A DNA stretch of 64,000 nucleotides. It comes from Hyalangium minutum (GTDB lineage Bacteria > Myxococcota > Myxococcia > Myxococcales > Myxococcaceae). The stretch covers positions 62,001 to 126,000 of the forward strand of contig NZ_JMCB01000034.1 of NCBI RefSeq assembly GCF_000737315.1, written 5' to 3'. Each line of letters begins with the position of its first letter. Positions within the stretch are counted from its first letter, which is position 1. The position numbers were made by a program, and so were the translations under genes. Below are positions 4,382-50,589 of the stretch, piece after piece. The notes beneath the pieces were generated by a model. The model did no database searches, was not told the DNA's origin, and saw only the letters and a program-made list of their open reading frames with translations.

Positions 4382-4384
4382 GGG

Positions 4385-8637: not shown

Positions 8638-8639
8638 CC

Positions 8640-9695
8640 ATGGCCAACATGGCACAGGCAGTCCGTATGGCCCTGCACTACGCCGAGGAGAACCTCGGTG
8701 TCATGGACATCTTCGGTGAGGACGTGGGCCCGCCGCTCGGTGGCGTCTTCACCGCCACGCAGGGTCTGAAGAACGCGTGGAACTCGCCGCTGGATGAGCG
8801 CGGCATCATCGGCACGGCGATTGGCCTCGCGATGGCGGGCCAGCGCCCCGTCGCGGAGATCCAGTTCGCCGACTACATCTACAACACCATCGATCTGCTG
8901 AAGATCGCGGGCAACACGCTCTGGTCGAGCAATGGCGACTGGAACCTGCCCATGGTGGTGAAGACGCCGGTGGGCAGCGGCATCCGCGGGTCCATCTACC
9001 ACTCGCACTCGTTCGACGCGACGGCCACCCACATCCCGGGCTGGAAGATCGTCATCCCGTCCAACCCGCTGGACGCGTACGGGCTGATGCTCGCGGCCTG
9101 CCAGGACCTCAACCCCGTCATGTACCTGGAGCCCAAGGCGCTGCTGCGCGTGAAGGGCGAGGAGCGCATCCCCGGCGAGCCGGACGACGACAAGCAGCTG
9201 TCGAAGATGATCGACGCGCCGCTGGGAGACCGCTCGGCGTGGAAGGCGCAGTGGCCCGCGCTGCAGCCGTACGTGGTGCCCATCGGCCAGGGCAAGGTGG
9301 TGCGCCAGGGCGATCAGGTGACGGTGGTCAGCTACGGCCGCACCCTGCCCCTGTGCGCCAAGGCGGCCGACACCCTGCGCGAGCAGGGCGTGAGCGCCGA
9401 GGTCATCGACCTGCGCACGCTGTGGCCGTACGACTGGGAGCTGATCAAGGGCTCCATCGAGAAGACGGGCCGCGTGCTGTTCGTGAACGAGGACACCGAG
9501 GTGACGAACTTCGGAGAGCACCTGATGCGCCGCACCGTGGAGGAGCTCTTCTACAAGCTGCTGGCGCCCCCTCGGCTGCTGGCCGGCAAGTTCGTGCCCG
9601 GCATCGGCCTGGCCGACACCCTGGAGATGGCCTCCGTTCCCCAGCAGGCGGACATCACCGAGGCCATCCAGAAGCTGGCCTCCGAGCAGCCGTAG
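8640..9695 (+). CDS. 2-oxoacid dehydrogenase E1 beta subunit
   Basis: GEDVG..GGVF, PLDERGIIG, EIQFADY, EVIDLRTLWPYD motifs. Confidence 0.92.
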   Translation: MANMAQAVRMALHYAEENLGVMDIFGEDVGPPLGGVFTATQGLKNAWNSPLDERGIIGTAIGLAMAGQRPVAEIQFADYIYNTIDLLKIAGNTLWSSNGDWNLPMVVKTPVGSGIRGSIYHSHSFDATATHIPGWKIVIPSNPLDAYGLMLAACQDLNPVMYLEPKALLRVKGEERIPGEPDDDKQLSKMIDAPLGDRSAWKAQWPALQPYVVPIGQGKVVRQGDQVTVVSYGRTLPLCAKAADTLREQGVSAEVIDLRTLWPYDWELIKGSIEKTGRVLFVNEDTEVTNFGEHLMRRTVEELFYKLLAPPRLLAGKFVPGIGLADTLEMASVPQQADITEAIQKLASEQP

Positions 9696-9721
9696 GCTCT
9701 CCCACATCGGTGTAAATCTTC

Positions 9722-9764
9722 GGGCCGCCGCTCCTAGGGTTGGAGGAGAGGCGGCCCTTTCGTT
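9722..9764 (+). terminator. Rho-independent terminator of the E1 alpha/beta operon
   Basis: GGGCCGCC (9722-9729) / GGCGGCCC (9750-9757) stem with inner CTCCT/AGGAG pairing, followed by TTTCGTT. Confidence 0.6.
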
Positions 9765-9778
9765 AGACTCCCTGGGCC

Positions 9779-10264
9779 GTGTCCAGCCCTATCGCCAAGA
9801 ACTCGACGCCCTCGCCCACTCCCGCGACTCCCGCCGCGTTCCGGATCCGCAAAGCCCGCCGCGGAGATGTGGAGGCACTCTCCACGCTCCTGCGAGAGCT
9901 GGGCTACACGGAGGGCTCGGACACGCAGACGGTCCACTGGGTCACCAGCCATCCGGAGATCGAGATCTACGTGGCCTGCGATCTTCAGGACCGGCCCGTG
10001 GGCATGCTGAGCCTCTCGCACCGTCCGCAGCTGCGGCTGCGCGGACGCATTGCCACCGTGGACGAGCTGGTGGTGACGGAGCCGTGGCGGCGCCGAGGCG
10101 TGGGCCGAGCGCTGCTGCTGCACGCCATCGAGCGGGCGCGGGTGCTGAGTGTGAAGCGGCTGGAGCTGGCGGCCCGCCAGGACACGGGGACTGAAACGGG
10201 GCGCTTCTACGAGGCCTGCGGCTTCGTGGCGGACTGCATGGTGTTCCGCCACGCGGGCTCGTGA
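9779..10264 (+). CDS. GNAT-family N-acetyltransferase
   Basis: VDELVVTEPWRRRGVGRALL (acetyl-CoA motif A) and 'RFYEACGF'. Confidence 0.88.
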   Translation: MSSPIAKNSTPSPTPATPAAFRIRKARRGDVEALSTLLRELGYTEGSDTQTVHWVTSHPEIEIYVACDLQDRPVGMLSLSHRPQLRLRGRIATVDELVVTEPWRRRGVGRALLLHAIERARVLSVKRLELAARQDTGTETGRFYEACGFVADCMVFRHAGS

Positions 10265-33171: not shown

Positions 33172-36100
33172 CTAGCGAGGGAGCGAATGCGCGTCCAACC
33201 ATTGCGAGACCTGCTTCGCATCGGAGGCGCGGCGCTGGCGGCTCCAGAACTCTCGGGCTTGAGAGGCCAGTTCCACGGCGCGCGGCCTCTCCCCTCCTCC
33301 ATCCCATAGCGCCCGGGCCAGCGGAAATTGGACTCGCGCTCGCCTCGCCACGGGCGCAACCGCCAGCGCCCGCTCCAGCCACGGCCGGGCCTCCACCGGG
33401 CTCCCCTCCGCGAGCAGGAGCTTGCCCATCCCCAGCAAGGGGCCGAACCGCTCTGGATGGTCTGGCGGCAGCACCTTCTCCTGCAGCTCGATGGCGCGCG
33501 TGTACTTCTCTCGCGCCTCCGCGCCGCGGCCGAGATCTCTCAGCGCATCTCCCACGCTGCTCAACGAGAGAGCCACATCCGGGTTGTCGGGCCCCAGGGC
33601 CTTCAGCCGCACGGCCAGGGCGCGTTCCCCCAGCTGCCTGGCTTCCTCATACCTCCCCATCATGTCCAGGAGGCTGCTGAGGTTCGCGAGCAGCGTGGCG
33701 ACGCGTGGGTGCTCGGCTCCGAGCATCTTCTCCCGGAGCATCAGCGCCCGGGTGTGCATCTGATGCGCCTCTTCGTAGCGCCCCAGCTCCCCGAGAGCGA
33801 GGCCCAGGCTGGCGAGCGAGATGGCCACGCTCGGGTGCTCCGGGCCCAGCACCTTCTCTCGGATCGCCAGCTCGCGCGCGAAGGCGGCTCGCGCCTCTTC
33901 GGATCGCCCCAGCTCCATGAGAGCGTTCCCCAGGATGTTGAGCGAGGAGGCCACGGCCCGGTGGTCGGGCCCCAGCAGCTTCTCCCGGATCGCCAGCCCT
34001 CGCACGAGGGGGGCTCGCGCCTCTTCAAATCGGCCCAGATTCAGGAGGGAGAGCCCCAGATTGTTGAGCGCAACGGCGACGTCCGGGTGCTCGGAGCCGA
34101 GCGCCTTTTCCTGGATCGCCAGCGCCCGCGCGGCGGCCGCGTGCGCTTCCTCGTACCGGCCCAGATCCCCGAGAACGAGCCCCAGGTTGTTGAGCGAGGA
34201 GGCCACGGCCGGGTGCTCGGGGCCCAGCGTCTTCTCTCGGAGCACGAGCCCACGGGCGAAGGCGGCGCGCGCCTCTTCATGGCGGCCCAGATCCCAGAGC
34301 TCCGCGCCCAGGCTGTTGAGCGCGGCCGCCACGCTCGGATGCTCGGGACCCAGCACCTTCTCCCGGATCGCCAGCACGCGCTCAGCCATCTGGCGCGCCT
34401 TCTCGTATTGGCCCTGCTTGCTGAACACGATGGCCAGATCGCTCAAGGAGCTGGCCACCTCCGGGTGCTCGGGGCCCAGCACCTTCTCCCTGAGCGCCAG
34501 CGCGGCCTCGCACTCTCGTAGGGCTTCGTCATACCGGCCCAGCTCGATCAGCACGAGGCCGAGATTGGTGAGCGCAGAGGCGCGGATCCGGTCATCATCC
34601 GCCAGATCCACGAACTGCTCCACCGTGGGCCGCAGCGACAGCGCCTCTTGCAGGCGCCCCATGTGATAGCCCACCACCGAGACCCGTGCGCTCCAAGCTC
34701 GGGCCAGCGTCGCCATGTCCTTGCCCCGCGCCGCCGCGGTCATCGTCTGATGGAGCCGCTCCTCCGCCCCCTTGTAGTCGCCCGCCTCGCTGCGCAGCTG
34801 GGCCGACAGCAACAACGTGCGCGCCAGCAACGGCGCGTACCCCACCGGCTCTACCTGCGGCACCAGCTCATCCGCTCGCGCCACTCCCTGCTTGAACTTG
34901 CCGGCCGCCAGCAGCACCTCCAGTCGGTCCACCTGCTCCTGCAACGCGTCGACTCTCGCGCGCACCGTGGGCTCTTCGGGCGGGGGCACCGCCGCCGTCA
35001 GCGCCTTGGCATCCATGCAGTACTCCAAAGGCGGCAGCGCCTGCACCGCCTGCACCGCCTTGCCCACCAACTCCTCATCCGGCGCCTGCGTCAGCAGCTC
35101 CGTCAGCGCTCTGAGCTGGCTGCGCCGCCTCTCCAGGCACATCTCCTCGCGCACCCACAAGCTCTCCGCTCTCGCCTCTCCCTCTCGACTCACTCCCAGG
35201 CACACCTCGGTGCGCTGCTTCACCCACCTCCCAGCGTACGCCTCCAGCCCCTTCACCACTCGCTCCGCCGTCTCCGGCGCGTACGGCAGACCTGTCGCCA
35301 CCAGCGCCTGCCTCACCTTCTGCTTCACTGCCTCGTCCCACACACCCGCAAGGTGATGCCCCAACCCGTCGCACGGCTGCTGCCGGTCCGCCCAGCCCCA
35401 CACCGCCAGCACACCCAACAACACCGTTACGCTCGTCACAGCCCCCTTCCTCACACGCTCGCGACTCTTCACCTCGGGGTCCGCCGACAGCGCCTTCAAC
35501 ACCTCTCCCATCGACGACGGACGGCGCTCCGGCTCGCTCTGCAAACCTCGCAGCACCGTGCGCGCCACCCACGCTGGCACCGCTGCTCCCTCCGGCACTC
35601 GCGCCTTCCCCGCTCGCTGCGCCTCCCTCAGCTCAGACACCGTCGCCGCCTCATACGGCACCCTTCCGTAAAGCCCCTCGTACAGCGATACGCAGAATGC
35701 ATACAGGTCGCTGCGCGCGTCTTCCCTCTTCCCTTGGAACTGCTCCTCCGCCATGTAGGCGGGTGTTCCCATCCACCTCTCCCCACCCCGCGTCAGCGGC
35801 GCTATCACTCCCGTGGCCGCTGGCAACGGCGACAGCCCTGGCTCCTCACTCTCGAGGGCCACGGGGCCCAGCCTCGCCAGCCCGAAGTCCGTCACTCGTG
35901 CGCGCCCATCCGCTCCCACCAGCACGTTGTCGGGCTTGAAGTCATGATGGATCAGCCCTGCCTCGTGCGCCGCCGCCAGCCCTCGTCCTGCCGCAAGGTA
36001 CTGCCTCAGCACCTCCTTCCACCCTCGGCCCTGCTGCCACTGGCGCAGCGTCTGCCCCTCCACGTGCTCCATCGCGATGAACAGCGTCCCGTCCTCCAGC

Positions 36101-36508
36101 CGCCCCGCGTCGTACACACCCACCACGTTCGAATGGCTCAGCCGTGCCATCGCCTGAGCCTCACGCAGGAAGCGGCCTTGCTCCTCGTCCACCCGCGCGT
36201 TGGCTCCGCTCCAGGCTCGCAGCAGCTTGAGCGCCACGCGCCGGTCCAGCCGTGCGTCGTACGCCGAGAGCACCACTCCCATGGAGCCCTGGCCCAGCTG
36301 CTTCAGCACCGTGTACCGGCCCAGCATCGTCTGCCCAGGTTGCGGCAGGGTGGGCGGCACGACCTCCTCCTCCGGCGCCTCGTACGGCCACGTGCCCACC
36401 CCCTCCTCCCGATCCCCTGGGGTGGAGTCCGGATCGCCACCCGCGGCCACCACCTCATCGCTGAGAGAGCCACCGCGTTCCTTCTCTGGCTGCTCGCCTT
36501 CGCTCATG
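33172..36508 (-). CDS. Ser/Thr protein kinase with TM segment and C-terminal TPR array
   Basis: GQGSMG, VALK, HHDFKPDN, DFG, GTPAYM; TM (VTVLLGVLAVWGW); nine 42-aa 'LGPEHPxVAxSL' TPR units. Confidence 0.93.
33420..34560 (-). repeat. Intragenic 126-bp (42-aa) TPR tandem repeats
   Basis: Nine units of REKxLGPEHPxVAxSLxxLG counted in the translation; boundaries approximate. Confidence 0.8.
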
Positions 36509-36552
36509 GCCCTCTCTCCGACCGCAAGCCGCAGCCGCAGGCTCACCCTCGC

Positions 36553-37914
<1,362 letters not shown>

Positions 37915-37993
37915 CGAAAACTACCACCCCAGGTCAACACAAGAGAACAGCCTCCACTCCAACAAGAAAGACTCAGAACCACTGAATTCACCT

Positions 37994-38027
37994 GCCTCGC
38001 TCGCTCGGCTGGAGCAGCGAGCGAGGC
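37994..38027 (-). terminator. Hairpin terminator after the RCC1 gene
   Basis: Perfect 12-bp stem GCCTCGCTCGCT (37994-38005) / AGCGAGCGAGGC (38016-38027), 18 nt past the RCC1 stop. Confidence 0.6.
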
Positions 38028-38045
38028 CCCCCCACTGTCGGAGCA

Positions 38046-40667
38046 TCACCCTCCGATAAGACCGACTCCACCACCGGGAGGAACGAAGATGCTCCCGTCG
38101 CCCGGCAGAGCCGTGACCTGCGTGGGGCTCGACCGGTTGGTGGTCGTCCCCTCTCCGAGCTGGCCGTAGCTGTTGTAGCCGCAGGACCGGACGATGGCGC
38201 CCTTGTCCAGCGCCATCGTGTGATGGTGGCCACCAGAAGAGAGGTCCACGATAGAGCTCAAGAGGGTCGCCGCCGGCGCCGTGCGGTTGGTGGTCGTCCC
38301 ATCACAGAGCTGGCCATAGGTGTTGTAGCCCCAGCCCGACACGGTCCCATCCCTCCTCAAGGCCAACGTGGAGTAGCTCCTCGCGACGATTGCGATGACA
38401 TCGCCGAGGCTCAGGACCTGCACCGGCGACGAGCGGTTGGTGGTCGTCCCGTCTCCGAGCTGGCCGTAGTAGTTGTAACCCCAGGCCCTCACCGTGCCGC
38501 TCGTGGCCAGCGCCATCGTGTGGTACATGCCCGCAGAGACAGCGGCGATGCTGGGGAGTCCGGGGACCTGCACCGGCGACAGGCAGTCGGTGGTCGCTCC
38601 GTTGCCCAGCTGGCCGTAGGAGTTGTAGCCCCAGGTCCACACAGTGCCGTCCGCCTTCAGTGCCACCGTGTGGTAGATGCCCGCAGCGATGGAGATCACA
38701 CCGTTGAGGCCAGGGACCTGCGTCGGCGAGGAGCGAGAGATGTTCGTTCCGTTTCCGAGCTGGCCGTAGCCGTTGTAGCCCCAGGTCCACACGGTGCCGT
38801 CTGCCTTGAGCGCCACCGTGTGGTAGCCTCCGGGGGAGACCGCGATGACGCCCTCCAACCCGGGCACGAGCTGCGGCGTGGGGCTGTTGGTGGTCGTCCC
38901 GTTGCCCAGCTGGCCGTAGCCGTTGTAGCCCCAGGTCCACACGGTGCCGTCATCCTTCAGCACGACCGTGTGGTGGGTGCCCACCTCCGCGTCGACGACG
39001 CCGCTCATCCCCGTCAGCAGTGCAGGCGTGAGCCTGTTGGTGGTCGTCCCGTCGCCCAGCTGGCCGTAGGAGTTGTAGCCCCAGGTCCACAGCGCCCCGC
39101 CCTTCCCCACGGCCACCGAGTGGGCAGTGCCGCCAGCCGTCGAGACGATCCCGCTGACCACGACGGCCACGGGCGAGAGGCGCTGGGAGACGGTCCCATC
39201 TCCCAGCTGGCCGTAGTAGTTGTAGCCCCAGCCAAACAGGGTGTGAGGGTTCGTCACGACCAGCTGGCGCTTCTGGGCCACTGTGTGAGTGGCACCCGCG
39301 CCGAACATCTTGACGCCGGTCATCCCCGGGACCTGCACCGGCGTGGCGGAAGTGGTGGTGCTCCCGATTCCCAGCTGTCCGTTGTAGTTGGAACCCCAGG
39401 CATACAAGGTGCCATCCTGCCGCTTGGCCACGGAGTGGAAGGCGCCGGCGGCGATCTCGACGGCTTGGGTGAGGCCCGACACCTGCACCGGGAAGACGCT
39501 GTCGACGGTGGTCCCATTTCCCAGCTGGCCGTAGGAGTTGGAGCCCCAGCTCCACGCGGTGCCGTCGCTCTTCACGCTGACCGTGTGGTAGTAGCCTCCG
39601 GAGAGGGAGCGGACGCCGCTGATGCCCGCCACCTGTACGGGCGTCAACCGGGTGAGGGTGGTCCCGTCCCCCAGCTGCCCGTTGGCGTTGGATCCCCAGG
39701 CCCAAGCGCTTCCGTCCTTCTTCACGGCCACCGTGTGGAGGTAACCCGCGGCGATGCCGAAGACGCCGCTGAGACCGGACACCTGCACGGGCGTCAGGCG
39801 GCTCGTGGTGGTCCCATCCCCGAGCTGGCCGTAGCCGTTGTAACCCCAGGCCCACACGGTCCCGTCCGCCTTCAGCGCCACCGTCCGAGCGTAGAAGGTC
39901 GCCACCGCGACGACGTCGGTCAGGCCGGGCACCTGCCTGGGCACCGCATGGAGCGTGGTGGTGCCATCTCCGAGCTGGCCGCTGGAGTTGTACCCCCAGG
40001 TCCACACGCTCCCATCCTCCGTCACCGCCGCCGAGTGCGTGTCCCCGGCCGACACGGAGACGACGTGGCTCACCCCCCTCACCCTCGTGGGAGAATTGCG
40101 CTGGGTCCTCTCGCCGTTGCCGAGCTGGCCATAGGTGTTGTAGCCCCACCCCCACACAGAGCCGTCCGACTTCACCTCCAGCGTGTGGTTGCCGCCGAGG
40201 CTCAGGCTGGGACAGAACTGGACGACGTTCCGGAACACCGTCTTGGGCAGGTTGTTGCAGTAGCTGCGATTGCCATTGCTGTCGATGATCATCGGGTAGG
40301 CCTTCACCTCGAAGCCGTGCACCCCGCAGCCCACCCCGGCCTCGCTGAAGAACCACTCCCCCGTCTCTCCCACGCGCTCGTCGACCGCATGCAGCGTGCC
40401 GTCGACGTAGTACTCGAGCTTCGCGGCATTGGCCCCATTGATGGCCGTCCAGGTTCCCGCGCCGGCCAGCTCGCCCTCGAAGGAGCTCACGCCTTCCAGC
40501 GAGAGGTCGTCGATGGCCGCCCCCGACGAGCACAGCGCCGACTCCTGGGTCCCCAGCGTCTCCTCCGGGCCGATCCCTCCCTCTTCGGGAGGAGCACCAC
40601 AAGCCGCCAGCAGCACCGAGGCCAATACCGCCAACACATCCGAACGCTTCAGGTCTCTCTTGAGCAT
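38046..40667 (-). CDS. RCC1/BLIP-II repeat lipoprotein with N-terminal Ig-like domain
   Basis: Lipobox LLAAC; 14 'WGxNxxGQLG' repeats; start set at ATG 40667. Confidence 0.9.
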   Translation of the reverse strand: MLKRDLKRSDVLAVLASVLLAACGAPPEEGGIGPEETLGTQESALCSSGAAIDDLSLEGVSSFEGELAGAGTWTAINGANAAKLEYYVDGTLHAVDERVGETGEWFFSEAGVGCGVHGFEVKAYPMIIDSNGNRSYCNNLPKTVFRNVVQFCPSLSLGGNHTLEVKSDGSVWGWGYNTYGQLGNGERTQRNSPTRVRGVSHVVSVSAGDTHSAAVTEDGSVWTWGYNSSGQLGDGTTTLHAVPRQVPGLTDVVAVATFYARTVALKADGTVWAWGYNGYGQLGDGTTTSRLTPVQVSGLSGVFGIAAGYLHTVAVKKDGSAWAWGSNANGQLGDGTTLTRLTPVQVAGISGVRSLSGGYYHTVSVKSDGTAWSWGSNSYGQLGNGTTVDSVFPVQVSGLTQAVEIAAGAFHSVAKRQDGTLYAWGSNYNGQLGIGSTTTSATPVQVPGMTGVKMFGAGATHTVAQKRQLVVTNPHTLFGWGYNYYGQLGDGTVSQRLSPVAVVVSGIVSTAGGTAHSVAVGKGGALWTWGYNSYGQLGDGTTTNRLTPALLTGMSGVVDAEVGTHHTVVLKDDGTVWTWGYNGYGQLGNGTTTNSPTPQLVPGLEGVIAVSPGGYHTVALKADGTVWTWGYNGYGQLGNGTNISRSSPTQVPGLNGVISIAAGIYHTVALKADGTVWTWGYNSYGQLGNGATTDCLSPVQVPGLPSIAAVSAGMYHTMALATSGTVRAWGYNYYGQLGDGTTTNRSSPVQVLSLGDVIAIVARSYSTLALRRDGTVSGWGYNTYGQLCDGTTTNRTAPAATLLSSIVDLSSGGHHHTMALDKGAIVRSCGYNSYGQLGEGTTTNRSSPTQVTALPGDGSIFVPPGGGVGLIGG
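38130..40200 (-). repeat. Intragenic ~150-bp RCC1 tandem repeats (14 units)
   Basis: Recurring plus-strand 'tggccgtag..gttgtagccccag' blocks, each matching one in-frame RCC1 blade. Confidence 0.85.
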
Positions 40668-40680
40668 GGTCTCTCCCCTC

Positions 40681-40696
40681 TGCACTCGCCACGCCA
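40681..40696 (-). promoter_or_regulatory. Candidate sigma54 -24/-12 promoter for the RCC1 gene
   Basis: Minus strand TGGCGTGGCGAGTGCA (GG-N10-GC). Caveat: predicted +1 is only ~3 nt from ATG 40667. Confidence 0.35.
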
Positions 40697-40792
40697 GCCG
40701 TGGCGGCCAACCATGGCTCCCTGCTTTTCCAGCGATTTCCTTGGGTTTCCTATTTACGGGTTTCGCCAGAGAGGGCCTCTGGCGGAGGCCCC

Positions 40793-40844
40793 TGGTCACA
40801 GCAGTAGCCAGGCCCAGGGCAGGCCCTGATCACAGCTGTTATCA
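40793..40844. promoter_or_regulatory. Pair of palindromic upstream boxes (putative bEBP sites)
   Basis: TGGTCAC-AGCA-GTAGCCA (40793-40810) and TGATCAC-AGCT-GTTATCA (40827-40844). Confidence 0.45.
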
Positions 40845-40872: not shown

Positions 40873-42400
40873 TCAGTACTGGCCCTTCAGCGTGGTGGTG
40901 TAGCTGGTGAAGGCGCGGAGTTGGACGAACCAGGTACCCGGAAGCGGGTTGGGCAGGGTGCACGTCTCGTTGTTGCCCTTGCGCAGGGGCCGACACTGGT
41001 AGGCGTACGTCTCTGGCAGCTGGCCATAGCGGACGTAGAGGTCCGCGTCTCCCGTGCCTCCGGAGAGGGTGAAGACCACCGAGGGCCGCCCGGCCGGGAC
41101 CTCCAGCTTGAAGTTCTTCTGGCCGCCGGTGATGTCGGACACACTTGTTGCCACCCCGTTGGCAATGGGCGTGGCCTGGGGGCGCTTGTACAGCAACCGG
41201 TTGGGCGAGGTCGTGTCAAAGACATCCAGCTGCACCTGATCCACGCTCGCATCGGCGATCAAGCGAGCAGGGATGCCGGCGGGCAAGACGCCCTGGGACA
41301 GAAGGATGGCCGCCAAGCCGCTCACGTGAGGTGTGGCGAACGAGGTCCCCTCGACGTTCGTCCAGGCCTCGTCACTGAACATCGCCGCGGATTTGATGTT
41401 CGCACCGGGAGCCCAGAGGTCCAGACATTCTCCAAAGTTGGATCCATTGAAGCCGCTCGACCAGCGCGTCTGCGCCTCGTCGATCGCGCCCACGGTCAAG
41501 ATGCGCTCCCGGAACGGGTGGGTGGCGTCCGGCTGGAGACGGGCCGGCGAGCAGGTGCAGGCGTTCAGGCCGGCATTCCCCGCTGCGACCACCAGGACGA
41601 GCCCGGGATTGCTCGCCATGACATCCGCGGCCGCATCGAGCGGTGCGAACGGGCTCGTGGTGGTGAAGCTCAGGTTGACGATGGCCGGCGTGACGGCGTT
41701 GTTCGCCACCCACTCCATCGCTTGCACCAGCCCATCAACCGTCGCCTCGCCCAACTGGTTGAACGCCTTGACCGAGTTCAAACGGACCTTCTTGGCGACA
41801 CCGTACGTCTTGCCTCCAATGATCCCCGCCACGGCGGTACCATGCCCGGAGAAGTCATCCCCGAACTCCGTGGTGTTGTTGAACGCGACCTGGGCGCGCC
41901 CTTCGAACTCCGAGTGCGATGCCCGGATGCCCGTGTCGATGATGTAGACGTTGACGCCCGTCGCGTCTTCGGCCTGGTAGCTGTTGCTCAGCGGCAGCCG
42001 CTCCTGGTCGATCCGATCCAGGTTCCAAGGCGCTGGAGACTGGACGCCCGACACCCTGACGATGCCGTTCTCCTGGACGTACTCCACCTGGGGATCCTCG
42101 GCCAGCGCCCGAGCCTGCTCCTCGTTGGCGGAGATGAGGAAGCCGCGAAAGGCGGTCTCGTGGGTGGTGAGGACACGTGCGCCGTACGGCTTGGCCAGCG
42201 CATCTGCCCTCAGCGCCATGCTCATCAGACCCCGTGCGGGCTTCTCCTTGAGGACGACGAGGTACTCGCCCTTCACGGGCTCCGGGGACCTCACCAGCTT
42301 GCCCTGCTCCGGCACCCGAGGTGGCGCAGCGAGCGCCCCCATCGAGGTCAGGACGAGACACGCGGTGATCAACCTGCTCCAGCTCTTCATGCTTGGCATC
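40873..42400 (-). CDS. Secreted S8 subtilisin-like serine protease (I9 propeptide, C-terminal PPC domain)
   Basis: IIDTG, GHGTAVAG, GTSFATPHV triad; PPC 'LSGGTGDADLYVRYG...GTWFVQL'. Confidence 0.95.
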
Positions 42401-42424
42401 TGTTCTCTCTTTTCAATCATTGGG

Positions 42425-43213
42425 TCAGGGAGCTGCGGCACGGCGCACCTGTGCTTGAAGGCTCAGCTCCTGCTCCTTCACGAGCCGGCGCTGGTTGTGC
42501 GCAGCGATGTACTGCAACAGCTTCTCGAGCGAGGTCCCCTTCGCGGCTTCGACCAGGGCACGAGCTCTCTCGGGCTCTTGATCCGCGAAGATCTCGTAGA
42601 GCTCCATTCGGGTCGCGGCCATCGAGCGCCTGGCGCTCAATGACAGCTCCGGGCTGAAGGAGTCCGCCAGGATGATGCCTTCGACGGTGGACACCCACTG
42701 CTCGCGAGCGGGGTTCTGTCTCCAGGCCAATGCCTCGCGCAGGTAGTCGATCCGCATCAGGCGCTTGATGCTGGACTCCAGGGACTCCTCGGCTTCTGTC
42801 GAGGAGCCCAGCGTCCGGCGCAGCTGCTCATACATCCGCGTGTCGGCGAGCAGCGCCTCGTAGTCCTTCCGTCCATTGGAATCGAGGAGGATGTGCTCGC
42901 GGAAGTAATCGAACCGCGCCAGCTCCGGCTCCGTCTTGAAGAGCTTCGCCTTCATCACGTCGGTCGCCGTGGTGAACTCGCCGTGCTCCCCTTCCTCTCC
43001 TGGAACCTCCTCGGGCGCCGCGAGCAGGGCGGGGGGAGGAGGCACGGCGGGCCGCTCCGGCACCGCGACACGAGCCGGTGCCGGAGGAGTGTTCTCCCCC
43101 CTCACCGGGGCAGCCCTGATGAAGGCGGAGTCCTCTGGGCTGTCCAGCGCCGCGACGATGAACGCCAGCGCCACGAGCCCCGCAATGACAAACAGATACC
43201 GGCTGATCTTCAT
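42425..43213 (-). CDS. Membrane-anchored helical hypothetical protein
   Basis: N-terminal TM, Pro-rich linker, helical domain; 21-24 nt gaps to both neighbours on the same strand. Confidence 0.75.
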   Translation of the reverse strand: MKISRYLFVIAGLVALAFIVAALDSPEDSAFIRAAPVRGENTPPAPARVAVPERPAVPPPPALLAAPEEVPGEEGEHGEFTTATDVMKAKLFKTEPELARFDYFREHILLDSNGRKDYEALLADTRMYEQLRRTLGSSTEAEESLESSIKRLMRIDYLREALAWRQNPAREQWVSTVEGIILADSFSPELSLSARRSMAATRMELYEIFADQEPERARALVEAAKGTSLEKLLQYIAAHNQRRLVKEQELSLQAQVRRAAAP

Positions 43214-43234: not shown

Positions 43235-44329
43235 CTAAGGGATGACGTCGGTGGGCACGCCATAGAGGATGATGCGGTTGATGTAGCGCACCTCGTCGTT
43301 CTGGAACCGCACGGAGCCCACCAGATAGCCCTGAGCCACGAGGATGTTGGACACCAGATCCGTCGACACTGGCGCGATGTTGTAGACCTTCCCGAAGTAG
43401 GTGGTCCTCTGAATGTCCACGATGGGATCCAGGGTGCCATCCGCCTTCACCAGCTCGTCGCCCACCTTGAGGGTCTGCGCCTGCACGATGCGGCCCTCGC
43501 CGTTGATGACAGGATGCTCGAGGGTGATGCTGAGCCGGCCGCCAGACTGGGTGGTGATGATGCAGAGCTTCTGCTCCGCATCGCGGAGCTCTCGCGTGTA
43601 GCTATAGGTGCTGTTCTGGTGCAGCCGCAGGTTGTCGAGCGTGGAGTCCGGGGTCAGCGTGATCAGGTCATCGCGCAGTGAGTTCATCGCGTCGAGGATG
43701 GGCACCTCTCCGCTGGAGAAGAGGATCTTCTGCTCGGGGGTGTAGCAAGCCGCCTCGCAGTAGCCGTTCACATGGGAGGGAGTGAAGACCGGCTGGGTGC
43801 TCTCCTTATCGAGATAGAACATGCAGTCCTCGAGATTTTTGTGAGGGAAGAGCTGGATGTTGTCCTCGGAGGTGATGTCCGACGAGGTGCTGAAGGTGGG
43901 GTAGAGCTGACGCCCCTTCCTCCGCCACGAGTCCCGCGACCACTGGAAGTAACCGTTGAGATCCGTCGTCTGGTAGGTGGGGCCCGACAGGTACAGGGCC
44001 ATCATGGCGGAGGTGTTCATCTTGAAGAGGTAGTCCGGGCCCGTGAACGCGCCCTCACCCTCCGGGTTCTTCTCCGGATCGGCCTCCAGATAGTCCTTCA
44101 GCGTCCCGCCCCCCGCGGCAGCCTGGCCCGTGTTGAAGAAGGCTGCCGGATCCCCGACGTTCTGGAGCGTCCCGCACTTGCGAGCCCACTCGACTCGAGC
44201 CGCCGCCGCCGCATTCGTACTCAGGCTGTCGACAGTGCATCGAGCCGTGAGGATGGGCTGCGCGAGCACCTGCATCGGCAACAGCGCCCCCACCGCCAAG
44301 GCGATGGCACCCCAGATTCTATTGAACAT
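43235..44329 (-). CDS. Secreted protein with C-terminal Hint autoprocessing domain
   Basis: Signal peptide; Hint block A C195-YTPEQKI, block B 'SITLEHPV', 'LKVGDELV', block F 'KVYNI...NILVAQGYLVGS'; 25-aa tail. Confidence 0.88.
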   Translation of the reverse strand: MFNRIWGAIALAVGALLPMQVLAQPILTARCTVDSLSTNAAAAARVEWARKCGTLQNVGDPAAFFNTGQAAAGGGTLKDYLEADPEKNPEGEGAFTGPDYLFKMNTSAMMALYLSGPTYQTTDLNGYFQWSRDSWRRKGRQLYPTFSTSSDITSEDNIQLFPHKNLEDCMFYLDKESTQPVFTPSHVNGYCEAACYTPEQKILFSSGEVPILDAMNSLRDDLITLTPDSTLDNLRLHQNSTYSYTRELRDAEQKLCIITTQSGGRLSITLEHPVINGEGRIVQAQTLKVGDELVKADGTLDPIVDIQRTTYFGKVYNIAPVSTDLVSNILVAQGYLVGSVRFQNDEVRYINRIILYGVPTDVIP

Positions 44330-44389: not shown

Positions 44390-46444
44390 CTACGGAGAGG
44401 AGCGCGGAAGGGAGCCGCCAGTCGTGGGCATGGCGACGAAGCTCGCGGCCGCCTTCCGGAGATCCGGGTTCGGATCGTGCTCGCTGGCCCAGGCCAGCAG
44501 GGGCAGCGCCTCCGGCACGGCCGCGCGCTGCTCTCCGAGGAGGTGGATCACGTCGACCCGGACTCCGTTGGTGGGATCCATGCGCAGCGCCTGCGCCAGA
44601 GCGGGGAGCAGGGGCGCCAAGGGCCGGAAGCCGCTGGCGAAGACGGCGACCCGCCGGACCTCGGGGGCGGGATCCTTGAGCATGAACTCGGACAGGAGCT
44701 GGTCGGCGCGGGGATCCGGGATGACGCGCAGCGCCTCGAGGGCGGCCTGGCGAATCTGGGGATCCGCGGATCGGAGCGCATCCTCGAACGTGCTCAGCGC
44801 GTCCGGCGAGCGGGTGTTGCCCAGGGTCCGCAGCGCCAGCGCCTGCTGCTCCGCATTGGAGGCCGTGCTGTACTCGCTGTTGAGCTCGTGGACGAGGGCC
44901 TCCGTACCCTTCGCGTCCGTGTCGGAGAGCTGGAAGGCGGCATTGCCGAGCGCCAGCTTCGCCGTGTCCCGGAGCATCCCGTCCGCGTCGTTCCTCGCGC
45001 CACGCAGGGCGTCCAGGCCCTCGCGGGTGGGGTCCTTCGCCACTCCCAGCGCGGCCACCGCGTCCATGCGGATGTCCGTGGGAATGGACTGATCGCCGCA
45101 GACCTCCGCCAGGGACTGGATGGCCTCGCGGGTGCTGGCCGCGGAGAGCGCGCCGAGCATGGGGCTGGCAGCGATCGGATCCATCCCCGCGCGAATGATG
45201 CCGGGGACCTTGAGGGCCTCGGAGGGGTGGAGCATGAAGAGGGCGCGGAGCTGCTCCAAGGCCTGGGTGCGGGCATCATCCTTGGCCTGGGGATCTTCCG
45301 GGAGCGAGCGCAGCTCCTTGACCAGGGTGTCGAAGTCCTTGCCCTTCAGCACCTGGCGGTACTGCTCCATCGGGTCCTGCTCCATGCCCTGGAAGGCCGC
45401 CATGGAGGCGGTGCTCAGAGAGGCCCGGCGCGCCATGAAAGTGCCGATCAGCGTCGGATCCGGGCGGCGCTCCAGCAGGCTCAGGCTCAGGGACGACTCA
45501 TACGTGGTGGGAGGCATGGCCTGGCCCGCCTCCATCTCCACCCGCTCCCGCCCCTCGAGCGAGCGCGCCCAGAGATCGCGCTCCAGCTCGAAGGTGCTCG
45601 AGGCGCTCACGGTGATGTGGATCTGGCCAGTCAGAGGCTCGAGCCCCAACGGGGACGCCACGTGGGAGTAGGACTCCTTGCGCTTCTCGAAGCGGCCGGA
45701 GGCCAGGCGCTGATACACGGCATGGTAGCGGCCCGTGGTGTCGTACTCCTCGGCGCTCCAGGTGGCGCCCGGCACACCAGCCACGACGAACTGCGAACTC
45801 GCCACGACTCCCCGGAGGATGTTTCGCACGAGCGGATCCGTCGCCTGCTCGAAGTGCGTGAACGTCGCCAGACCGGTCTTGTCGTACGTGAGGAAGAAGG
45901 GAAGCTGAAGGGCTGCGGACAGGCTGCGCTGGACGTCGGGGGCCAGGGGGCCCGCGCCGCCAACGTCCACCGTCAGCGAGGAGAGCTTGATGTTCACCCG
46001 GGCATCGACGCGCTCGGCGTCGACAGAGACGACACCCACGTTCCACTCGCCCCGGAGGTTGAACCTCATCGAGGGCAGCGCCTGCGCGCCAGGCTGTGCC
46101 GGGCGAAAGGTGAGCTTCTGATCAGCGCTCAGGGAGTACCGGTAGAGCATCCCAGGGGTCCACGCGCGAGTTCCCGTGGAGGGCTTGGAGGACACGGCCG
46201 GGGCCGGCGCCGACGGGCCTCCGGCCGAAGGGGCTGCAGCCTGAGAGGACTGCGATTCCTGGGAGGGAGCCTCCGCAGAGGACGGGGACGCAAGCGCCCA
46301 CAGCCCCAGGAGACTGACAGCCAGGAGCGCGAGCGTCACCCCGAAGAGGACGCGTGCGCGCTGACCCGCCAGGAGGCCTCCTGGGGTCGACGCCTGTCCC
46401 ACGACAGCGATTGGCTTGCTGCTCACGTTGCCCGACTTCCGCAT
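44390..46444 (-). CDS. HEAT-repeat protein with vitellogenin/MTP-like N-terminal beta module
   Basis: 'LPFFLTYDKTG...RNILRGVVASSQF...EEYDTTGRYHAVY' then alpha-helical repeats incl. 'ALRTLGNTRSP'; N-terminal TM/signal. Start 46444 or 46588. Confidence 0.75.
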   Translation of the reverse strand: MRKSGNVSSKPIAVVGQASTPGGLLAGQRARVLFGVTLALLAVSLLGLWALASPSSAEAPSQESQSSQAAAPSAGGPSAPAPAVSSKPSTGTRAWTPGMLYRYSLSADQKLTFRPAQPGAQALPSMRFNLRGEWNVGVVSVDAERVDARVNIKLSSLTVDVGGAGPLAPDVQRSLSAALQLPFFLTYDKTGLATFTHFEQATDPLVRNILRGVVASSQFVVAGVPGATWSAEEYDTTGRYHAVYQRLASGRFEKRKESYSHVASPLGLEPLTGQIHITVSASSTFELERDLWARSLEGRERVEMEAGQAMPPTTYESSLSLSLLERRPDPTLIGTFMARRASLSTASMAAFQGMEQDPMEQYRQVLKGKDFDTLVKELRSLPEDPQAKDDARTQALEQLRALFMLHPSEALKVPGIIRAGMDPIAASPMLGALSAASTREAIQSLAEVCGDQSIPTDIRMDAVAALGVAKDPTREGLDALRGARNDADGMLRDTAKLALGNAAFQLSDTDAKGTEALVHELNSEYSTASNAEQQALALRTLGNTRSPDALSTFEDALRSADPQIRQAALEALRVIPDPRADQLLSEFMLKDPAPEVRRVAVFASGFRPLAPLLPALAQALRMDPTNGVRVDVIHLLGEQRAAVPEALPLLAWASEHDPNPDLRKAAASFVAMPTTGGSLPRSSP

Positions 46445-46606
46445 GGGGGTGCTCCGAGTTGGCGGCTCTTGCCGCTTCAGTTTCAGTTCTGGTTTAGAGG
46501 GCGGGTGCCGCATCCTCAGCCGATCGCTCGACCGAGGAGACAGCACCCGGTTCATCCCGCCTGGCGACAGCCAATGCCTCTCGGGCACGGCCGTCGCGTG
46601 GCGGTA

Positions 46607-47791
46607 TCAGCCGCAGCCCAGGCTCGACATGGTGCCGCTGGAGTTGGCCAGGTTGAGGACCTTGGAGATGCCGGGCCAGTTGGCGATGGTGACGTTCCAG
46701 GTCTTCTTGAAGAAGAGGAAGTTGACCTTCACGAAGGCCTGCAGCGAGCCCTTGAGCGCGCTCAGGTTGAGGTCAGCCTTGAGGGACCAACTGGGCGAGC
46801 AGAGGGTCCAGCCGAGGCTGGCCGCGGCCTGCGCGGTGGCGTTGATCAGGGACAGGGAGCCGGACACGCCGAAGCTGGCGATGGCGACGTTCACCGCAGC
46901 GGAGGCCACCACGTTGGCCCAGCCGCCGGCGTAGGAGGTGATCGCGGCCAGCGCGGGGCTCACCTGGCCGTTCAAGCCCATCTTCACGCCACCGGTCAGC
47001 TGCGACTTCACGGTGACCGGCACGGGGCCGACCATGAACGACTTGGAGACGGAGAAGAACGAGCGGCTCCAGTTGATGGGGGTGGGCGCGAAGGTCCCAG
47101 CGAGGTTGGCGCTCCAGATCTGCGAGCCCAGGGCGTACAGCGCGGCGGTGCCGCTGTTGCAGCCGCCCTGCTGCCCACAGACGTACGAGCGGCCGCGGAC
47201 CAGCTCTTTCTCCGTGTTGAAGGCGGTGCCAAAGAGCCGGCCCTCGGCGAGCGCCTCTTCCTTCTTCGCCACGGTGCCGTTCGCCGGCGTCGCGGTGACG
47301 GAGGTGTTGACGTTGTAGCCCGCACCGAAGATGGAGTTACCGAACCGCTCCGTGCGCTGGTAGTAGACACTGACGGGAGTGACCGCCATCTGCCCGATGA
47401 GCTTCAGCCCGGCCCCGGTCTGCGTCGGCGGCGTCTCGGACGGAGGCGGCACGTTCGGCGTGCTGGCCTCGGGGATGGTGGCCTGGAGGTAGTTCACGTT
47501 CCGCCGGCCATCGTTGATGTCGAGGAGAATGGGCGCGTTGAGCAGCTGCGCCTCGTTGTTGACGACCGCGTCCTGCTCGGGCGGCGTGTAGGTCGCGTTC
47601 GCGTCGAATGGGAGGACCTGCGTCTCCCAGGGGATCCTGTTGTCGAGCTGCGTGTTGGACGGGTAGATGGTGTACGGGTACTTCACGCTGTCGACGACAT
47701 AGGGATTCGGGTCCTGGTAATCCTGCGCGGACGCGACGGTTGCGACGGTGACTGCCACAAGCGCGAATGCGCGCGATACTGCCTTCATCAT
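46607..47791 (-). CDS. Secreted beta-rich hypothetical protein
   Basis: Signal peptide MMKAVSRAFALVAVTVATVASA-Q with GAGGGG RBS; alternating amphipathic strands in the C-terminal half. Confidence 0.8.
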   Translation of the reverse strand: MMKAVSRAFALVAVTVATVASAQDYQDPNPYVVDSVKYPYTIYPSNTQLDNRIPWETQVLPFDANATYTPPEQDAVVNNEAQLLNAPILLDINDGRRNVNYLQATIPEASTPNVPPPSETPPTQTGAGLKLIGQMAVTPVSVYYQRTERFGNSIFGAGYNVNTSVTATPANGTVAKKEEALAEGRLFGTAFNTEKELVRGRSYVCGQQGGCNSGTAALYALGSQIWSANLAGTFAPTPINWSRSFFSVSKSFMVGPVPVTVKSQLTGGVKMGLNGQVSPALAAITSYAGGWANVVASAAVNVAIASFGVSGSLSLINATAQAAASLGWTLCSPSWSLKADLNLSALKGSLQAFVKVNFLFFKKTWNVTIANWPGISKVLNLANSSGTMSSLGCG

Positions 47792-47830
47792 GTTGAGCCC
47801 CTCATTGCGTGGAACGGCTCGCAGCCCTGG

Positions 47831-47846
47831 TGCACGGGGCGAGCCA
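47831..47846 (-). promoter_or_regulatory. Candidate sigma54 -24/-12 promoter of the five-gene secreted operon
   Basis: Minus strand TGGCTCGCCCCGTGCA (2 mismatches to TGGCACG-N4-TTGCA); predicted +1 ~29 nt before ATG 47791. Confidence 0.55.
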
Positions 47847-47923
47847 CCCAAGAGGGGTTGGCCTTCTTTCATCGATCTACCGTGATTTCACGGGGTTACG
47901 GTTCTCCAGGGAATACAGGAATC

Positions 47924-47995
47924 CGGCAACAACCGTTATCACTGATAACTCACATGCCCTGGGAGTGGCTCGTGGCCTGGTAACGCGCGTTATCA
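47924..47995. promoter_or_regulatory. Palindromic upstream boxes (putative bEBP sites)
   Basis: CGGCAAC-AACC-GTTATCA (47924-47941), perfect GTTATCA-C-TGATAAC (47935-47949), TGGTAAC-GCGC-GTTATCA (47978-47995). Confidence 0.5.
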
Positions 47996-48099
47996 GGGTC
48001 GCTCGCGGAGCCGCTGCCCCGCTGAGGACGCGCTCGCGCCTGGGCGACTTGAGCCCCTGGGAGTATGAGCGGGGCGCCCTACCTGCTGAGCCGAGTTCG

Positions 48100-48206
48100 G
48101 GCTGGCGCTCGAAACGTAGGCTACCCGCTGCCCACGAGATCGAACATCTGGCCCACGCCCTTGGCGCGCGCCACTTCGTAGAGCGCTCGCGCCAGCGCCA
48201 CGTCCT
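48100..48206. repeat. 107-bp direct copy of 51489-51595 (ocd 3' end plus tip of convergent gene)
   Basis: Aligned by eye at offset 3389: one mismatch (48175 T vs 51564 C); joined directly to the truncated fumA. Confidence 0.92.
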
Positions 48207-49601
<1,395 letters not shown>

Positions 49602-49617
49602 GGTAGAACTCGCGGTC

Positions 49618-50589
49618 ATGGACCGCTCTCAGTTCCTTGGCTGCATCGTGGGGCTCGCTGTCGGGGACGCGCTTGGCTACCCCGCCGAGTTCCGGTCGCG
49701 GGCCCAGCTCCTTCGTGAGGTGGGCCCCCAGGGCATCACCGGGTTCCTCCGCCTGAAGGACCCGCGCTTCTCGCGGCCTTTCATGACGGGGCCGGATCAC
49801 CCGCCGGGCACCTTCACGGACGACACGCAGATGACGCTGGCGGTGGCTGAGGCGCTCCTGTCCCACGGCCGCGCGGGGCGAGACGCGCTGATGCAGGAAA
49901 TGGGGCGCCGCTTCGTGGAGTGGCACCGCTCGCCCGACAACAACCGGGCGCCGGGCGCTACCTGTGGCCGAGGCTGCGAGAACCTGGAGCAGGGTGTGCC
50001 CTGGCGGGAGGCGGGCGTTGCGAACAGCAAGGGCTGTGGCAGCGCGATGCGCGTGGCGCCCCTGGGCCTCTTCTATGAAGATCTGGACGAGGTGGAGTCC
50101 GTGGCTCGGGACTCCTCTCTGCCGACGCATGGGCATCCCTCGGCGCTGGAGTCCTCCGCCGCGGCCGCGCTGCTGGTGGCGCTGGCGCTGCGGGGCGAGC
50201 CCCCCGCTCGGATGTATGAGGAGGTCATGCGCCGCTGCGGGGGACGGAGCCCGGATTTCGACGCGTGCTTCTCGCGGGTGCCGGAGGTGCTGAACCGCCC
50301 TCCCGAAGAGGTGCTCACGAAGGCCGTGCTGGGCGAGGGCTGGGTGGCGGAGGAGGCCGTGGCCAGCGCCCTCTACTGCTTCTGGCGCCACCCGGACGAC
50401 TACCGGGCGGCTGTGCTGGAAGCGGTGAATACCGATGGTGATTCAGACAGCCTTGCGACCATTGCTGGCTCGATCAGCGGGGCGCGGCTGGGGTTGGGAG
50501 CGATCCCCTCGGAGTGGGCGCGGGGAGTGGAGCGCTCCGCGTACCTCCACGAGGTGGGCACCCGGCTCGCCGCAGCGCGCGGGCTGTAG
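49618..50589 (+). CDS. ADP-ribosylglycohydrolase (DraG/ARH family)
   Basis: GDALG, FTDDTQM, GCGSAMRVAP, GDSDSLATIAG. Confidence 0.93.
   Translation: MDRSQFLGCIVGLAVGDALGYPAEFRSRAQLLREVGPQGITGFLRLKDPRFSRPFMTGPDHPPGTFTDDTQMTLAVAEALLSHGRAGRDALMQEMGRRFVEWHRSPDNNRAPGATCGRGCENLEQGVPWREAGVANSKGCGSAMRVAPLGLFYEDLDEVESVARDSSLPTHGHPSALESSAAAALLVALALRGEPPARMYEEVMRRCGGRSPDFDACFSRVPEVLNRPPEEVLTKAVLGEGWVAEEAVASALYCFWRHPDDYRAAVLEAVNTDGDSDSLATIAGSISGARLGLGAIPSEWARGVERSAYLHEVGTRLAAARGL

Follow-up and report, generated by a model that had tools for sequence, protein, structure and literature searches.

Does a secreted bacterial Hint domain cut only at its N-terminal side, in the manner of Hedgehog proteins, or does it remove itself from the protein that carries it? 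The question is raised by one gene of the predatory soil myxobacterium Hyalangium minutum, which lies in the 64,000-nucleotide stretch analyzed here (assembly GCF_000737315.1, contig NZ_JMCB01000034.1, positions 62,001 to 126,000 of the forward strand; 67.8% G+C; hereafter the window). An initial annotation of this gene had described a secreted Hint protein with Hedgehog-like logic, wired for N-terminal cleavage only, whose N-terminal domain might be coupled to an external nucleophile. The comparisons reported here bear this reading out only in part. Judging from conservation across its relatives, we give a little less than an even chance to the reading that this is a bacterial intein-like (BIL) protein, in which Cys195 would form a thioester, Asn344 would make a C-terminal cut, and the flanking parts would be either ligated or released.

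A secreted precursor with an internal Hint domain

The gene encodes a precursor of 364 amino acids (aa), the parts of which map to the window as follows (a slash marks a junction or a predicted cleavage site).

43235 to 44329, minus strand: whole Hint gene, encoding signal peptide, N-domain, Hint and tail (from the list of open reading frames, ORFs, and the translation)
44261 to 44329, minus strand: signal peptide, residues 1-23, Sec-type, predicted site VLA/QP (read from sequence)
43748 to 44260, minus strand: N-domain, residues 24-194, an autonomous, secreted orphan fold ending in ...YCEAA (AlphaFold2, Foldseek and profile search)
43298 to 43747, minus strand: Hint domain, putatively BIL-type, residues 195-344 (Foldseek, Hint-only profile, site conservation and mapping of the PT-HINT end)
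43745 to 43747, minus strand: codon of Cys195, Hint residue 1 and expected nucleophile of the N-S acyl shift at Ala194/Cys195 (166/167 relatives; position 1 of the TIGR01445 intein_Nterm model falls on residue 195)
43298 to 43303, minus strand: codons of Q343-N344, the proposed C-terminal catalytic pair, with N344/D345 as scissile bond (conservation, loss together with Cys1 and His, absence from Hint-less relatives)
43238 to 43297, minus strand: C-terminal tail, residues 345-364, DEVRYINRIILYGVPTDVIP, with the motif (D/E)xxx[YF]xNRxxLxxxxxPxxx[ILV]P at the C-terminal end

Translation starts at an ATG at 44329. The N-terminus, MFNRIWGAIALAVGALLPMQVLA/QP, is organized into n-, h- and c-regions as Sec signal peptides are, and has an AxA-type site; among relatives, A23 is at least 90% conserved and the N-domain always begins at about residue 25. 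A scan for promoters and terminators was uninformative. The protein has 197 homologs, nearly all of about 365 aa, which carry the names "Hint domain-containing protein", "cell surface protein" or "hypothetical" and nothing else; the closest named ones are from Hyalangium gracile (86%) and H. versicolor (83%).

The landmarks listed in the initial annotation are all found where it placed them: the ORF itself, the signal peptide, the N-domain cysteines at 31, 52, 169 and 191, the Ala194/Cys195 junction, a TxEH block B (TLEH at 269-272), GYLVGS at 334-339, FQN at 342-344 and 25 residues after S339. Across 104 aligned sequences, C31, C52 and C169 do not vary, and with the counts given below this takes the landmarks well past anything chance would produce. 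What it had overlooked is the strand, the near-invariance of Q343, N344 and D/E345, and a further cysteine, Cys256, which is not conserved among relatives and completes the set formed by the four above and Cys195.

Fold and active site of the Hint domain

Curated models see the Hint of the window protein weakly, so that independent support for it was needed. PT-HINT scored 17 bits (cutoff 27.7; E = 0.007), Intein_splicing 14.2 (35.8) and TIGR01445 intein_Nterm 17.1 (24.5; E = 0.008), all below cutoff, and a few relatives just pass that of PT-HINT (P0059, 28.8; P0312, 29.4). An AlphaFold2 model of the full-length protein, built on 104 sequences, has a mean pLDDT of 86. When it was searched with Foldseek, residues ~195-340 matched inteins, BIL domains and Hedgehog with a probability of 1.0 and target TM-scores of 0.73-0.84, including BIL2 of T. 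thermophila (6y75), the BIL domain of C. thermocellum (2lwy, TM 0.84) and Hedgehog 1at0 (TM 0.73); the full-length model gave Hint matches only. At the level of the predicted structure, the Hint fold of this region is confirmed. A Hint-only family profile also recovered inteins and the C. thermocellum BIL from the PDB, with E values down to 9e-7.

The domain contains T269-x-x-H272 as block B and V315-Y316-N317 as block F, the latter aligned by the Hint-only profile with VYD of inteins and VYN of the C. thermocellum BIL. Beyond the usual end of a Hint, where G338-S339 occupy the canonical His-Asn position, it has a five-residue extension that closes in Q343-N344. Site conservation was counted over 167 non-redundant Hint segments of relatives: C191 and G338 are present in 167/167, C195 in 166/167, T269 and H272 in 165/167, N317 in 164/167 and S339 in 161/167, and D250, about 22 residues ahead of H272, is near-invariant (158/167). 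The hallmarks of the Hint superfamily, namely the beta-fold, the block A Cys1 and the block B TxxH, are thus all present. From this intact active site we infer thioester formation at Cys195, and an N-S acyl shift at Ala194/Cys195 is, on sequence grounds, the expected and well-founded first step.

A proposed displaced boundary at Q343-N344

How the C-terminal side of the domain behaves is less straightforward. HMMER alignments to inteins of the PDB end at block F and do not place block G, so that its placement comes from one Pfam coordinate mapping and manual comparison. In a sister protein from Stigmatella, PT-HINT (137 positions) aligned up to position 134, at the V of LVGDLAWQN, and its last positions therefore fall on G-D-L; mapped in this way, the canonical His-Asn of block G corresponds to Gly338-Ser339 in the window protein. 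A class 1 intein has His-Asn at block G and Cys, Ser or Thr at +1; here the first is Gly-Ser and the second is Asp or Glu in 162/167 relatives.

An intact Cys1/TxxH core combined with Gly-Ser at the His-Asn position is what one would see if the domain cut at its N-terminal side only. In that case the thioester would be resolved by hydrolysis, the precursor would be held (at the cell envelope, for example) by the tail acting as a docking or sorting motif, and the Hint would free the N-domain from a Hint-tail stub. According to the published description of type B BIL domains, these show no block G similarity and catalyze cleavage uncoupled from splicing (PMC4031507), which fits this possibility. 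We nevertheless consider it, the main rival of self-excision, rather unlikely, because it leaves unexplained the behavior of Q343-N344, which are as strongly conserved as Cys1, specific to the Hint, and lost together with Cys1 and His.

Q343 is found in 166/167 relatives and N344 in 164/167, followed by an acidic residue at 345 in 162/167, on a par with the catalytic core. The ending ...LVG[SD]xx[FWY]QN also occurs in sister Hint proteins with unrelated N-domains. Four degenerate paralogs that have lost Cys1 and/or His272 (P0146, P0162 and the products of 7889-8833 and 9110-9988 at locus L037) have all lost QN and retained the tail motif, its basic residue...Pro core reading NR in P0146 and P0162 and KR or QR in the two L037 paralogs. 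Since QN disappears with Cys1 and His272 while the tail stays, QN, unlike the tail, behaves as a component of the catalytic machinery, as far as such sequence comparisons go. The proposal of cleavage at the N-terminal side only fits poorly with this pattern of a near-invariant QN, an acidic residue after it and joint loss with Cys1 and His272.

Locus L037, from Pseudoalteromonas luteoviolacea IPB1, holds four short-form paralogs within 8 kb (1881-9988). In the last two, 7889-8833 and 9110-9988, Cys1 and QN are gone and TxxH and the tail are kept, and they may be regarded as natural dead-Hint controls.

Such paralogs, which are found in Pseudoalteromonas and in metagenomes, also suggest that an uncleaved form can be tolerated, and one could imagine that the Hint of the window protein is catalytically silent, a structural or binding module in a protein that is never processed. 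We regard this as very improbable: Cys1, T/H, N317 and QN are all intact in the window protein and in 164/167 relatives, and an intact set of this kind implies purifying selection on catalysis.

The tail and relatives without a Hint

The tail has N351, R352, P359 and P364 as invariant or nearly invariant residues and is modeled with low confidence (pLDDT ~52). It recurs in proteins that have no Hint at all. Seven relatives (P0124, P0128, P0171, P0184, P0187 and two further genes of locus L043) consist of a signal peptide, a complete N-domain, a linker of 6-30 residues and a C-terminal sequence that matches the tail, for example ...AYCPS-GSSALAQPK-DAISYENRVLLFRAVPEAVLPQ and ...AYCGS-...-EELRFMNRALHYKTIPAELIP, to be compared with N344/DEVRYINRIILYGVPTDVIP in the window protein. 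In these relatives the tail starts at the D/E that corresponds to the residue after N344, and none of the seven has QN ahead of it. A Hint hidden Markov model (HMM) matched them only with its first ~10 and last ~25 positions.

A tail HMM of 20 positions, run against 3,595 ORF segments (599,000 aa), found Hint-less relatives with E values of 6.8e-7, 3.2e-6, 7.8e-4 and 2e-3 and gave no unrelated match under E~0.8. P0184 was matched partially (E = 1.8) and P0124 was not reported; YxNR...P...P can be seen in both by inspection. At L043, a metagenome contig from ENA, three Hint-less N-domain-plus-tail genes stand in tandem (1-2710) with a 194-aa ORF between them and no partner homolog (see below).

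Two consequences follow. First, the N-domain and the tail are joined elsewhere without a Hint, so that C195 to N344 behaves as a discrete insert of 150 residues. This looks like the arrangement expected of an intein-like element with its C-terminal boundary at N344/D345, an interpretation drawn from the comparison of sequences. Its host is a secreted orphan protein and not a housekeeping enzyme, and the linkers of 6-30 aa in the Hint-less proteins leave no precise junction. If the Hint cut at its N-terminal side only, these relatives would simply keep the N-domain attached to the tail, and a terminal recognition motif would indeed behave as the tail does, occurring in the absence of a Hint and never anywhere but at the very C-terminal end.

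Second, a tail present in Hint-less proteins must have a role independent of the Hint, and thus, judged by architecture, is not a Hedgehog-type adduct-recognition region, as had been suggested for it: the same sequence stands directly after the N-domain in the seven Hint-less relatives, without QN. This bears on a Hedgehog-like outcome, in which an external nucleophile (a lipid, an amine of peptidoglycan or a protein lysine), presented by the tail and/or by the product of the downstream gene, would resolve the Cys195 thioester and become coupled to the N-domain at Ala194. The likeness to Hedgehog and other Hog proteins is real: both have a secreted N-terminal cargo domain, a Hint with Cys1 and TxxH and without the canonical His-Asn, a C-terminal extension and a common fold (TM 0.73 to 1at0). 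D250 also lies roughly where Hedgehog presumably has its cholesterol-activating Asp, an argument from position in the chain and not from superposition. The sterol- or adduct-recognition region of Hedgehog proteins, however, measures ~60-70 aa. Here the extension has only 20-25 aa and is not dedicated to a Hint, the defining C-terminal region of Hog proteins being replaced by a 20-aa tail that also ends Hint-less proteins, and an invariant Asn at the Hint/tail boundary, together with the Gln before it, goes unexplained. We judge a Hedgehog-like outcome improbable. Of the initial annotation, what is supported is a secreted protein with a nucleophilic Cys1, a TxxH block B and no canonical His-Asn; cleavage restricted to the N-terminal side and the tail as an adduct-recognition segment are not supported. 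Nothing that we found points to coupling of the N-domain to a lipid or another specific external nucleophile.

The N-domain

A fold search, which had been proposed for the N-domain, gave a confident fold with no structural neighbor. Modeled alone (residues 24-194), the domain reaches a pLDDT of 93.8 and a pTM of 0.89, and Foldseek returned nothing better than E = 1.1 and TM 0.13 in the PDB and no match in BFVD. Disulfides C31-C52 and C169-C191 are probably formed.

When 1.84 billion cluster representatives were searched exhaustively with a profile, only 86 matched, and in these the N-domain always comes directly after the signal peptide. Two candidates, P0183 and P0196, were discarded as artefacts, being highly repetitive sequences that scored via repeated short matches. 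Elsewhere the N-domain is fused to one or two PPC domains, a proprotein-convertase P-domain, VWA, LamG-like or Ig/PKD domains, or Cys-rich repeats, and one protein of 358 aa (P0121) carries two N-domains in tandem without a Hint. All proteins in which it is fused to other domains keep C191 and lack C195, which sets the boundary of the N-domain at 194/195 and assigns C195 to the Hint. As binding domains (PPC, VWA, LamG) replace the Hint in other relatives, an anchoring role, of the kind that coupling to an external nucleophile would provide, is conceivable.

A short form of the protein, of about 290 aa, is found in Bdellovibrionota, Oligoflexus, Pseudoalteromonas, Zooshikella, Spartinivicinus and Algicola. 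What is left of the N-domain in it is a core of ~95 aa with the blocks RCxxDSL..W..C, RPxYPxF and C...C[TE][SA]S/CYTP[ED]Q. The core followed by a Hint is found in Myxococcota, Pseudobdellovibrionaceae, Bacteriovoracaceae, Silvanigrellaceae and Oligoflexus. In a metagenome-assembled genome (MAG) of a Bacteriovoracaceae (L033, 2448-5558), a protein of 1036 aa has ~850 residues of Cys-rich repeats before the core, the Hint and the tail, and this unit can therefore end a much larger secreted protein. R30, D34, R45, W48, P144 and the four Cys are universally conserved in the N-domain, and no known catalytic site can be recognized among them. In predatory bacteria the N-domain most likely acts outside the cell, as an effector or a ligand.

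A membrane-anchored partner gene

Directly downstream of the Hint gene lies a gene that tends to accompany it.

42425 to 43213, minus strand: partner gene, 262 aa, starting 21 nt past the stop codon of the Hint gene (at its low-coordinate end)

In the partner an N-terminal membrane anchor is followed by a Pro-rich linker and by a helical domain of ~160 aa predicted to face the periplasm. Searches by BLAST and then by profile found homologs downstream of the Hint gene in 25/38 loci, spread over Myxococcota, Bdellovibrionota and Pseudoalteromonas and including 6/6 non-myxobacterial ones (two Bacteriovoracaceae, Pseudobdellovibrionaceae, Silvanigrellaceae, Pseudoalteromonas and a groundwater MAG). 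The two genes are closely spaced, with 21 nt between them in the window and an overlap in L035, and in tandem arrays of Hint genes the partner comes after the last copy. Immediate placement downstream on the same strand has exceptions in L004, where the copy lies several kb off on the opposite strand, and in L036, where it lies ~2 kb downstream. No partner homolog was found beside four Hint-less loci (one with 4-kb flanks, the others with at least 1.1 kb downstream), and it is this absence that makes the partner appear specific to the Hint.

A Hint-specific, membrane-anchored partner would suit a Hedgehog-like mechanism, in which it could present the nucleophile. Its only invariant residue is Glu204, and there is no conserved Lys, Cys or Ser that could serve as an acceptor. 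The gene is also unlike an immunity gene specific to a toxin, since it stands beside Hint-bearing members only and not beside Hint-less genes for the N-domain and tail.

The partner has no match in Pfam, NCBIfam, PADLOC or the PDB. UniRef names two of its homologs "Lipase helper protein" and "Lipase modulator". The lipase foldase Lif has an N-terminal membrane anchor, a Pro/Ala-rich linker and a helical periplasmic domain, and its gene lies directly downstream of that of its secreted client. The partner shares this architecture and gene order with Lif but no sequence similarity, and its client is not a lipase; homology to Lif finds no sequence support in Pfam Lipase_chap or in the PDB, which leaves an architectural analogy. 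BLAST matches over residues ~187-355 in non-myxobacterial loci had suggested that the partner accompanies the Hint regardless of the N-domain. This suggestion was withdrawn, as those proteins carry a shortened N-domain.

Some loci differ in layout. In Stigmatella aurantiaca DW4/3-1 (L002, CP002271, 2306-12103) there are three tandem cassettes, each with a Hint protein, a TM-anchored protein of ~270-288 aa and a protein of ~462-466 aa. Of the Hint proteins, two (274 and 290 aa) differ in their N-domain, which is Cys-rich, with the junction ICKCG/CFE, but share the ending ...LVGDLAWQN. The downstream genes of this type (270 and 288 aa) were tried as remote homologs of the partner and rejected, at an hhalign probability of 0.6%. 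Hint genes are tandemly duplicated in L003, L004, L022, L023 and L031 (Pyxidicoccus, Polyangium and Corallococcus), flanked by a protein of ~700-750 aa with faint FG-GAP/TcdB_toxin_midN similarity and an SBBP beta-propeller protein of ~380-465 aa; in L003 a Peptidase_C39 ABC exporter lies upstream.

Other genes around the Hint gene

The remaining neighbors in the window are the following.

33172 to 36546, minus strand: Ser/Thr kinase with a long TPR array, on the lower-coordinate side of the cluster
36553 to 37914, minus strand: sigma-54 activator with an FHA domain, on the lower-coordinate side
38046 to 40799, minus strand: RCC1-repeat protein of 917 aa, on the lower-coordinate side
40873 to 42441, minus strand: S8 peptidase, a secreted subtilase with Inhibitor_I9, Peptidase_S8 and PPC
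44390 to 46588, minus strand: HEAT/vitellogenin-N-like protein of 732 aa, with HEAT repeats and Vitellogenin_N ("lipoprotein amino-terminal region", E = 2.7e-13)
46607 to 47872, minus strand: 421-aa ORF, secreted-looking, no family in scans with Pfam, NCBIfam and PADLOC
47877 to 49619, minus strand: 580-aa ORF, no family in the same scans

The longest ORF of the subtilase overlaps the partner stop by 17 nt. The subtilase is syntenic with the Hint gene in the Hyalangium, Archangium, Cystobacter, Corallococcus and Myxococcus loci and not beyond. The HEAT/vitellogenin-N-like gene lies upstream of the Hint gene, with 60 nt between the two. Synteny of the Hint cluster with the gene for the 421-aa protein extends over 12 loci, though Hyalangium and Archangium differ in how that gene and the HEAT gene are ordered. 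All three are conserved in the Cystobacterineae only and are not core parts of the system. The HEAT/vitellogenin-N-like gene had been considered as a core link to lipids and was set aside for this reason. No sterol or lipid gene is consistently linked to the Hint gene, which is a further point against a Hedgehog-like coupling to a lipid. Downstream of the Hint cluster, the minus-strand genes from 33172 to 40799 are typical myxobacterial signaling genes.

Relation to known Hint proteins

From Stigmatella, Myxococcus, Photorhabdus, Serratia, Yersinia and Reinekea, Bürglin described bacterial proteins that have a signal peptide, carry a divergent Hint at the C-terminus and conserve cysteines upstream of it (for example, STIAU_1829, MXAN_6253 and plu1731), and credited the first sighting of the group to Dassa and Pietrokovski in 2005 (Burglin, 2008; PMC2362128). 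These proteins resemble the family studied here in their signal peptide, upstream cysteines and Hedgehog-like Hint length. They differ in the N-domain, in the junction (NSCMA/... versus CEAA/CYTPEQ here) and in the ending (...AGGFLVGDxxMQ versus ...AQGYLVGSxxFQN here). They are sister subtypes and not members of the family; another sister is formed by the short Stigmatella proteins with CKCG/CFE ... LVGDLAWQN.

Closer still may be the C-type BIL domains of predatory bacteria, associated with PPS-1 ("putative predator-specific domain 1") by Dori-Bachash et al. (2009; Funct Integr Genomics 9:153), as summarized in papers that cite this work (PMC9185962, PMC2797640). As described there, they are secreted Hint proteins of predators in which the Hint follows a conserved domain common to Bdellovibrio-like bacteria and myxobacteria. 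B. bacteriovorus was not among the top hits of our homolog search. From the taxonomic pattern and the architecture, set against that summary description, the present family is probably the C-type BIL/PPS-1 family, with appreciable room for doubt.

In type A BIL domains, the proposed route runs from an N-terminal thioester and Asn cyclization to ligation by aminolysis, for which no +1 nucleophile is required, or to cleavage (PMC4031507). The C. thermocellum representative (2lwy) is the best structural target of our Hint, shares the block F VYN and also lacks a +1 nucleophile. It has His-Asn at the canonical end of block G; the window protein has Gly-Ser there, and its Asn lies five residues further on, after Gln, so that the C-terminal His-Asn of type A is absent. 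The missing block G similarity agrees with the published description of type B, the level at which that type was compared. By the broad definition of BIL domains (PMC4031507, PMC7664689), the features found here are those of the class: a secreted protein that is not a housekeeping one, tandem and variable paralogs, and Asp or Glu at +1. Pretoxin-HINT proteins, which belong to polymorphic toxins and have the Hint ahead of a variable C-terminal toxin domain with an immunity gene behind it, are organized differently from ours, in which the cargo is N-terminal and only a conserved 20-aa tail follows the Hint. By these marks the protein is neither a type A BIL nor a class 1 intein, neither a pretoxin-HINT nor, in its architecture, a Hog protein. 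It belongs with the BIL-type Hint proteins of predatory bacteria, a family for which annotation and a partial description exist. Earlier papers may or may not cover three of its features: the displaced QN boundary, the Hint-linked partner gene and the N-domain-plus-tail relatives that have no Hint.

Discussion

If the protein is a self-excising BIL protein, its processing could proceed as follows. The precursor, made of the orphan-fold N-domain, the BIL-type Hint (C195 to N344) and the 20-aa tail, would be exported by Sec. Cys195, aided by T269 and H272, would convert the Ala194-Cys195 peptide bond into a thioester. Cyclization of Asn344 would break N344/D345, a step suggested by conservation, by the joint loss of catalytic residues and by the module boundary. 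The freed alpha-amine of the tail might then attack the thioester, which would ligate tail and N-domain as has been proposed for type A BIL domains; because the +1 residue is Asp or Glu and not Cys, Ser or Thr, no branched intermediate would be formed. Alternatively, water might resolve the thioester and leave the N-domain, Hint and tail as separate products. The Hint would remove itself under either outcome, and a ligated product would match the natural Hint-less proteins made of N-domain and tail. The membrane-anchored partner would be a dedicated periplasmic helper of the Hint-bearing precursor, acting as a chaperone, a timer or an inhibitor.

Several observations weigh against this model. 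N344 lies off the canonical block G position, which is occupied by G338-S339, and has no His before it, and the confidence of the AlphaFold2 model is low from residue 341 onward; the conservation of QN could be structural. The Hint-less proteins have linkers of 6-30 residues instead of a precise junction, and they could be deletion derivatives that retained an independently useful tail, such as a sorting or docking signal. As for the partner, 13/38 Hint loci have no detectable homolog, some of them on truncated contigs, Stigmatella-type loci carry a different, non-homologous downstream gene, and long flanks are available at one Hint-less locus only, so that its absence from such loci is weakly sampled.

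In its strongest form, the self-excision model would describe a distinct type of bacterial Hint that works in the periplasm or outside the cell, ligates without a +1 nucleophile through an Asn displaced by five residues, acts under a membrane-anchored helper, and splices a sorting peptide onto the C-terminal end of a predatory effector of orphan fold. We give this full version only a small chance. If ligation without a nucleophilic +1 residue proved efficient, such a Hint domain could also be of use to protein engineers.

BIL domains are poorly understood, and both their cellular role and the way in which their thioester is resolved are largely open. The family described here offers a test-bed for these questions, with a three-part precursor, Hint-less counterparts that predict the ligated product, dead-Hint paralogs and a dedicated partner. 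Its N-domain cargo, a confidently predicted fold without a solved relative that is found mainly in predatory bacteria, may bear on how these bacteria attack or recognize other cells. If the Hint does ligate its flanks, the Hint-less alleles would show us the spliced product, and the family would be a case of an intein-like element domesticated in the secreted proteins of predators.

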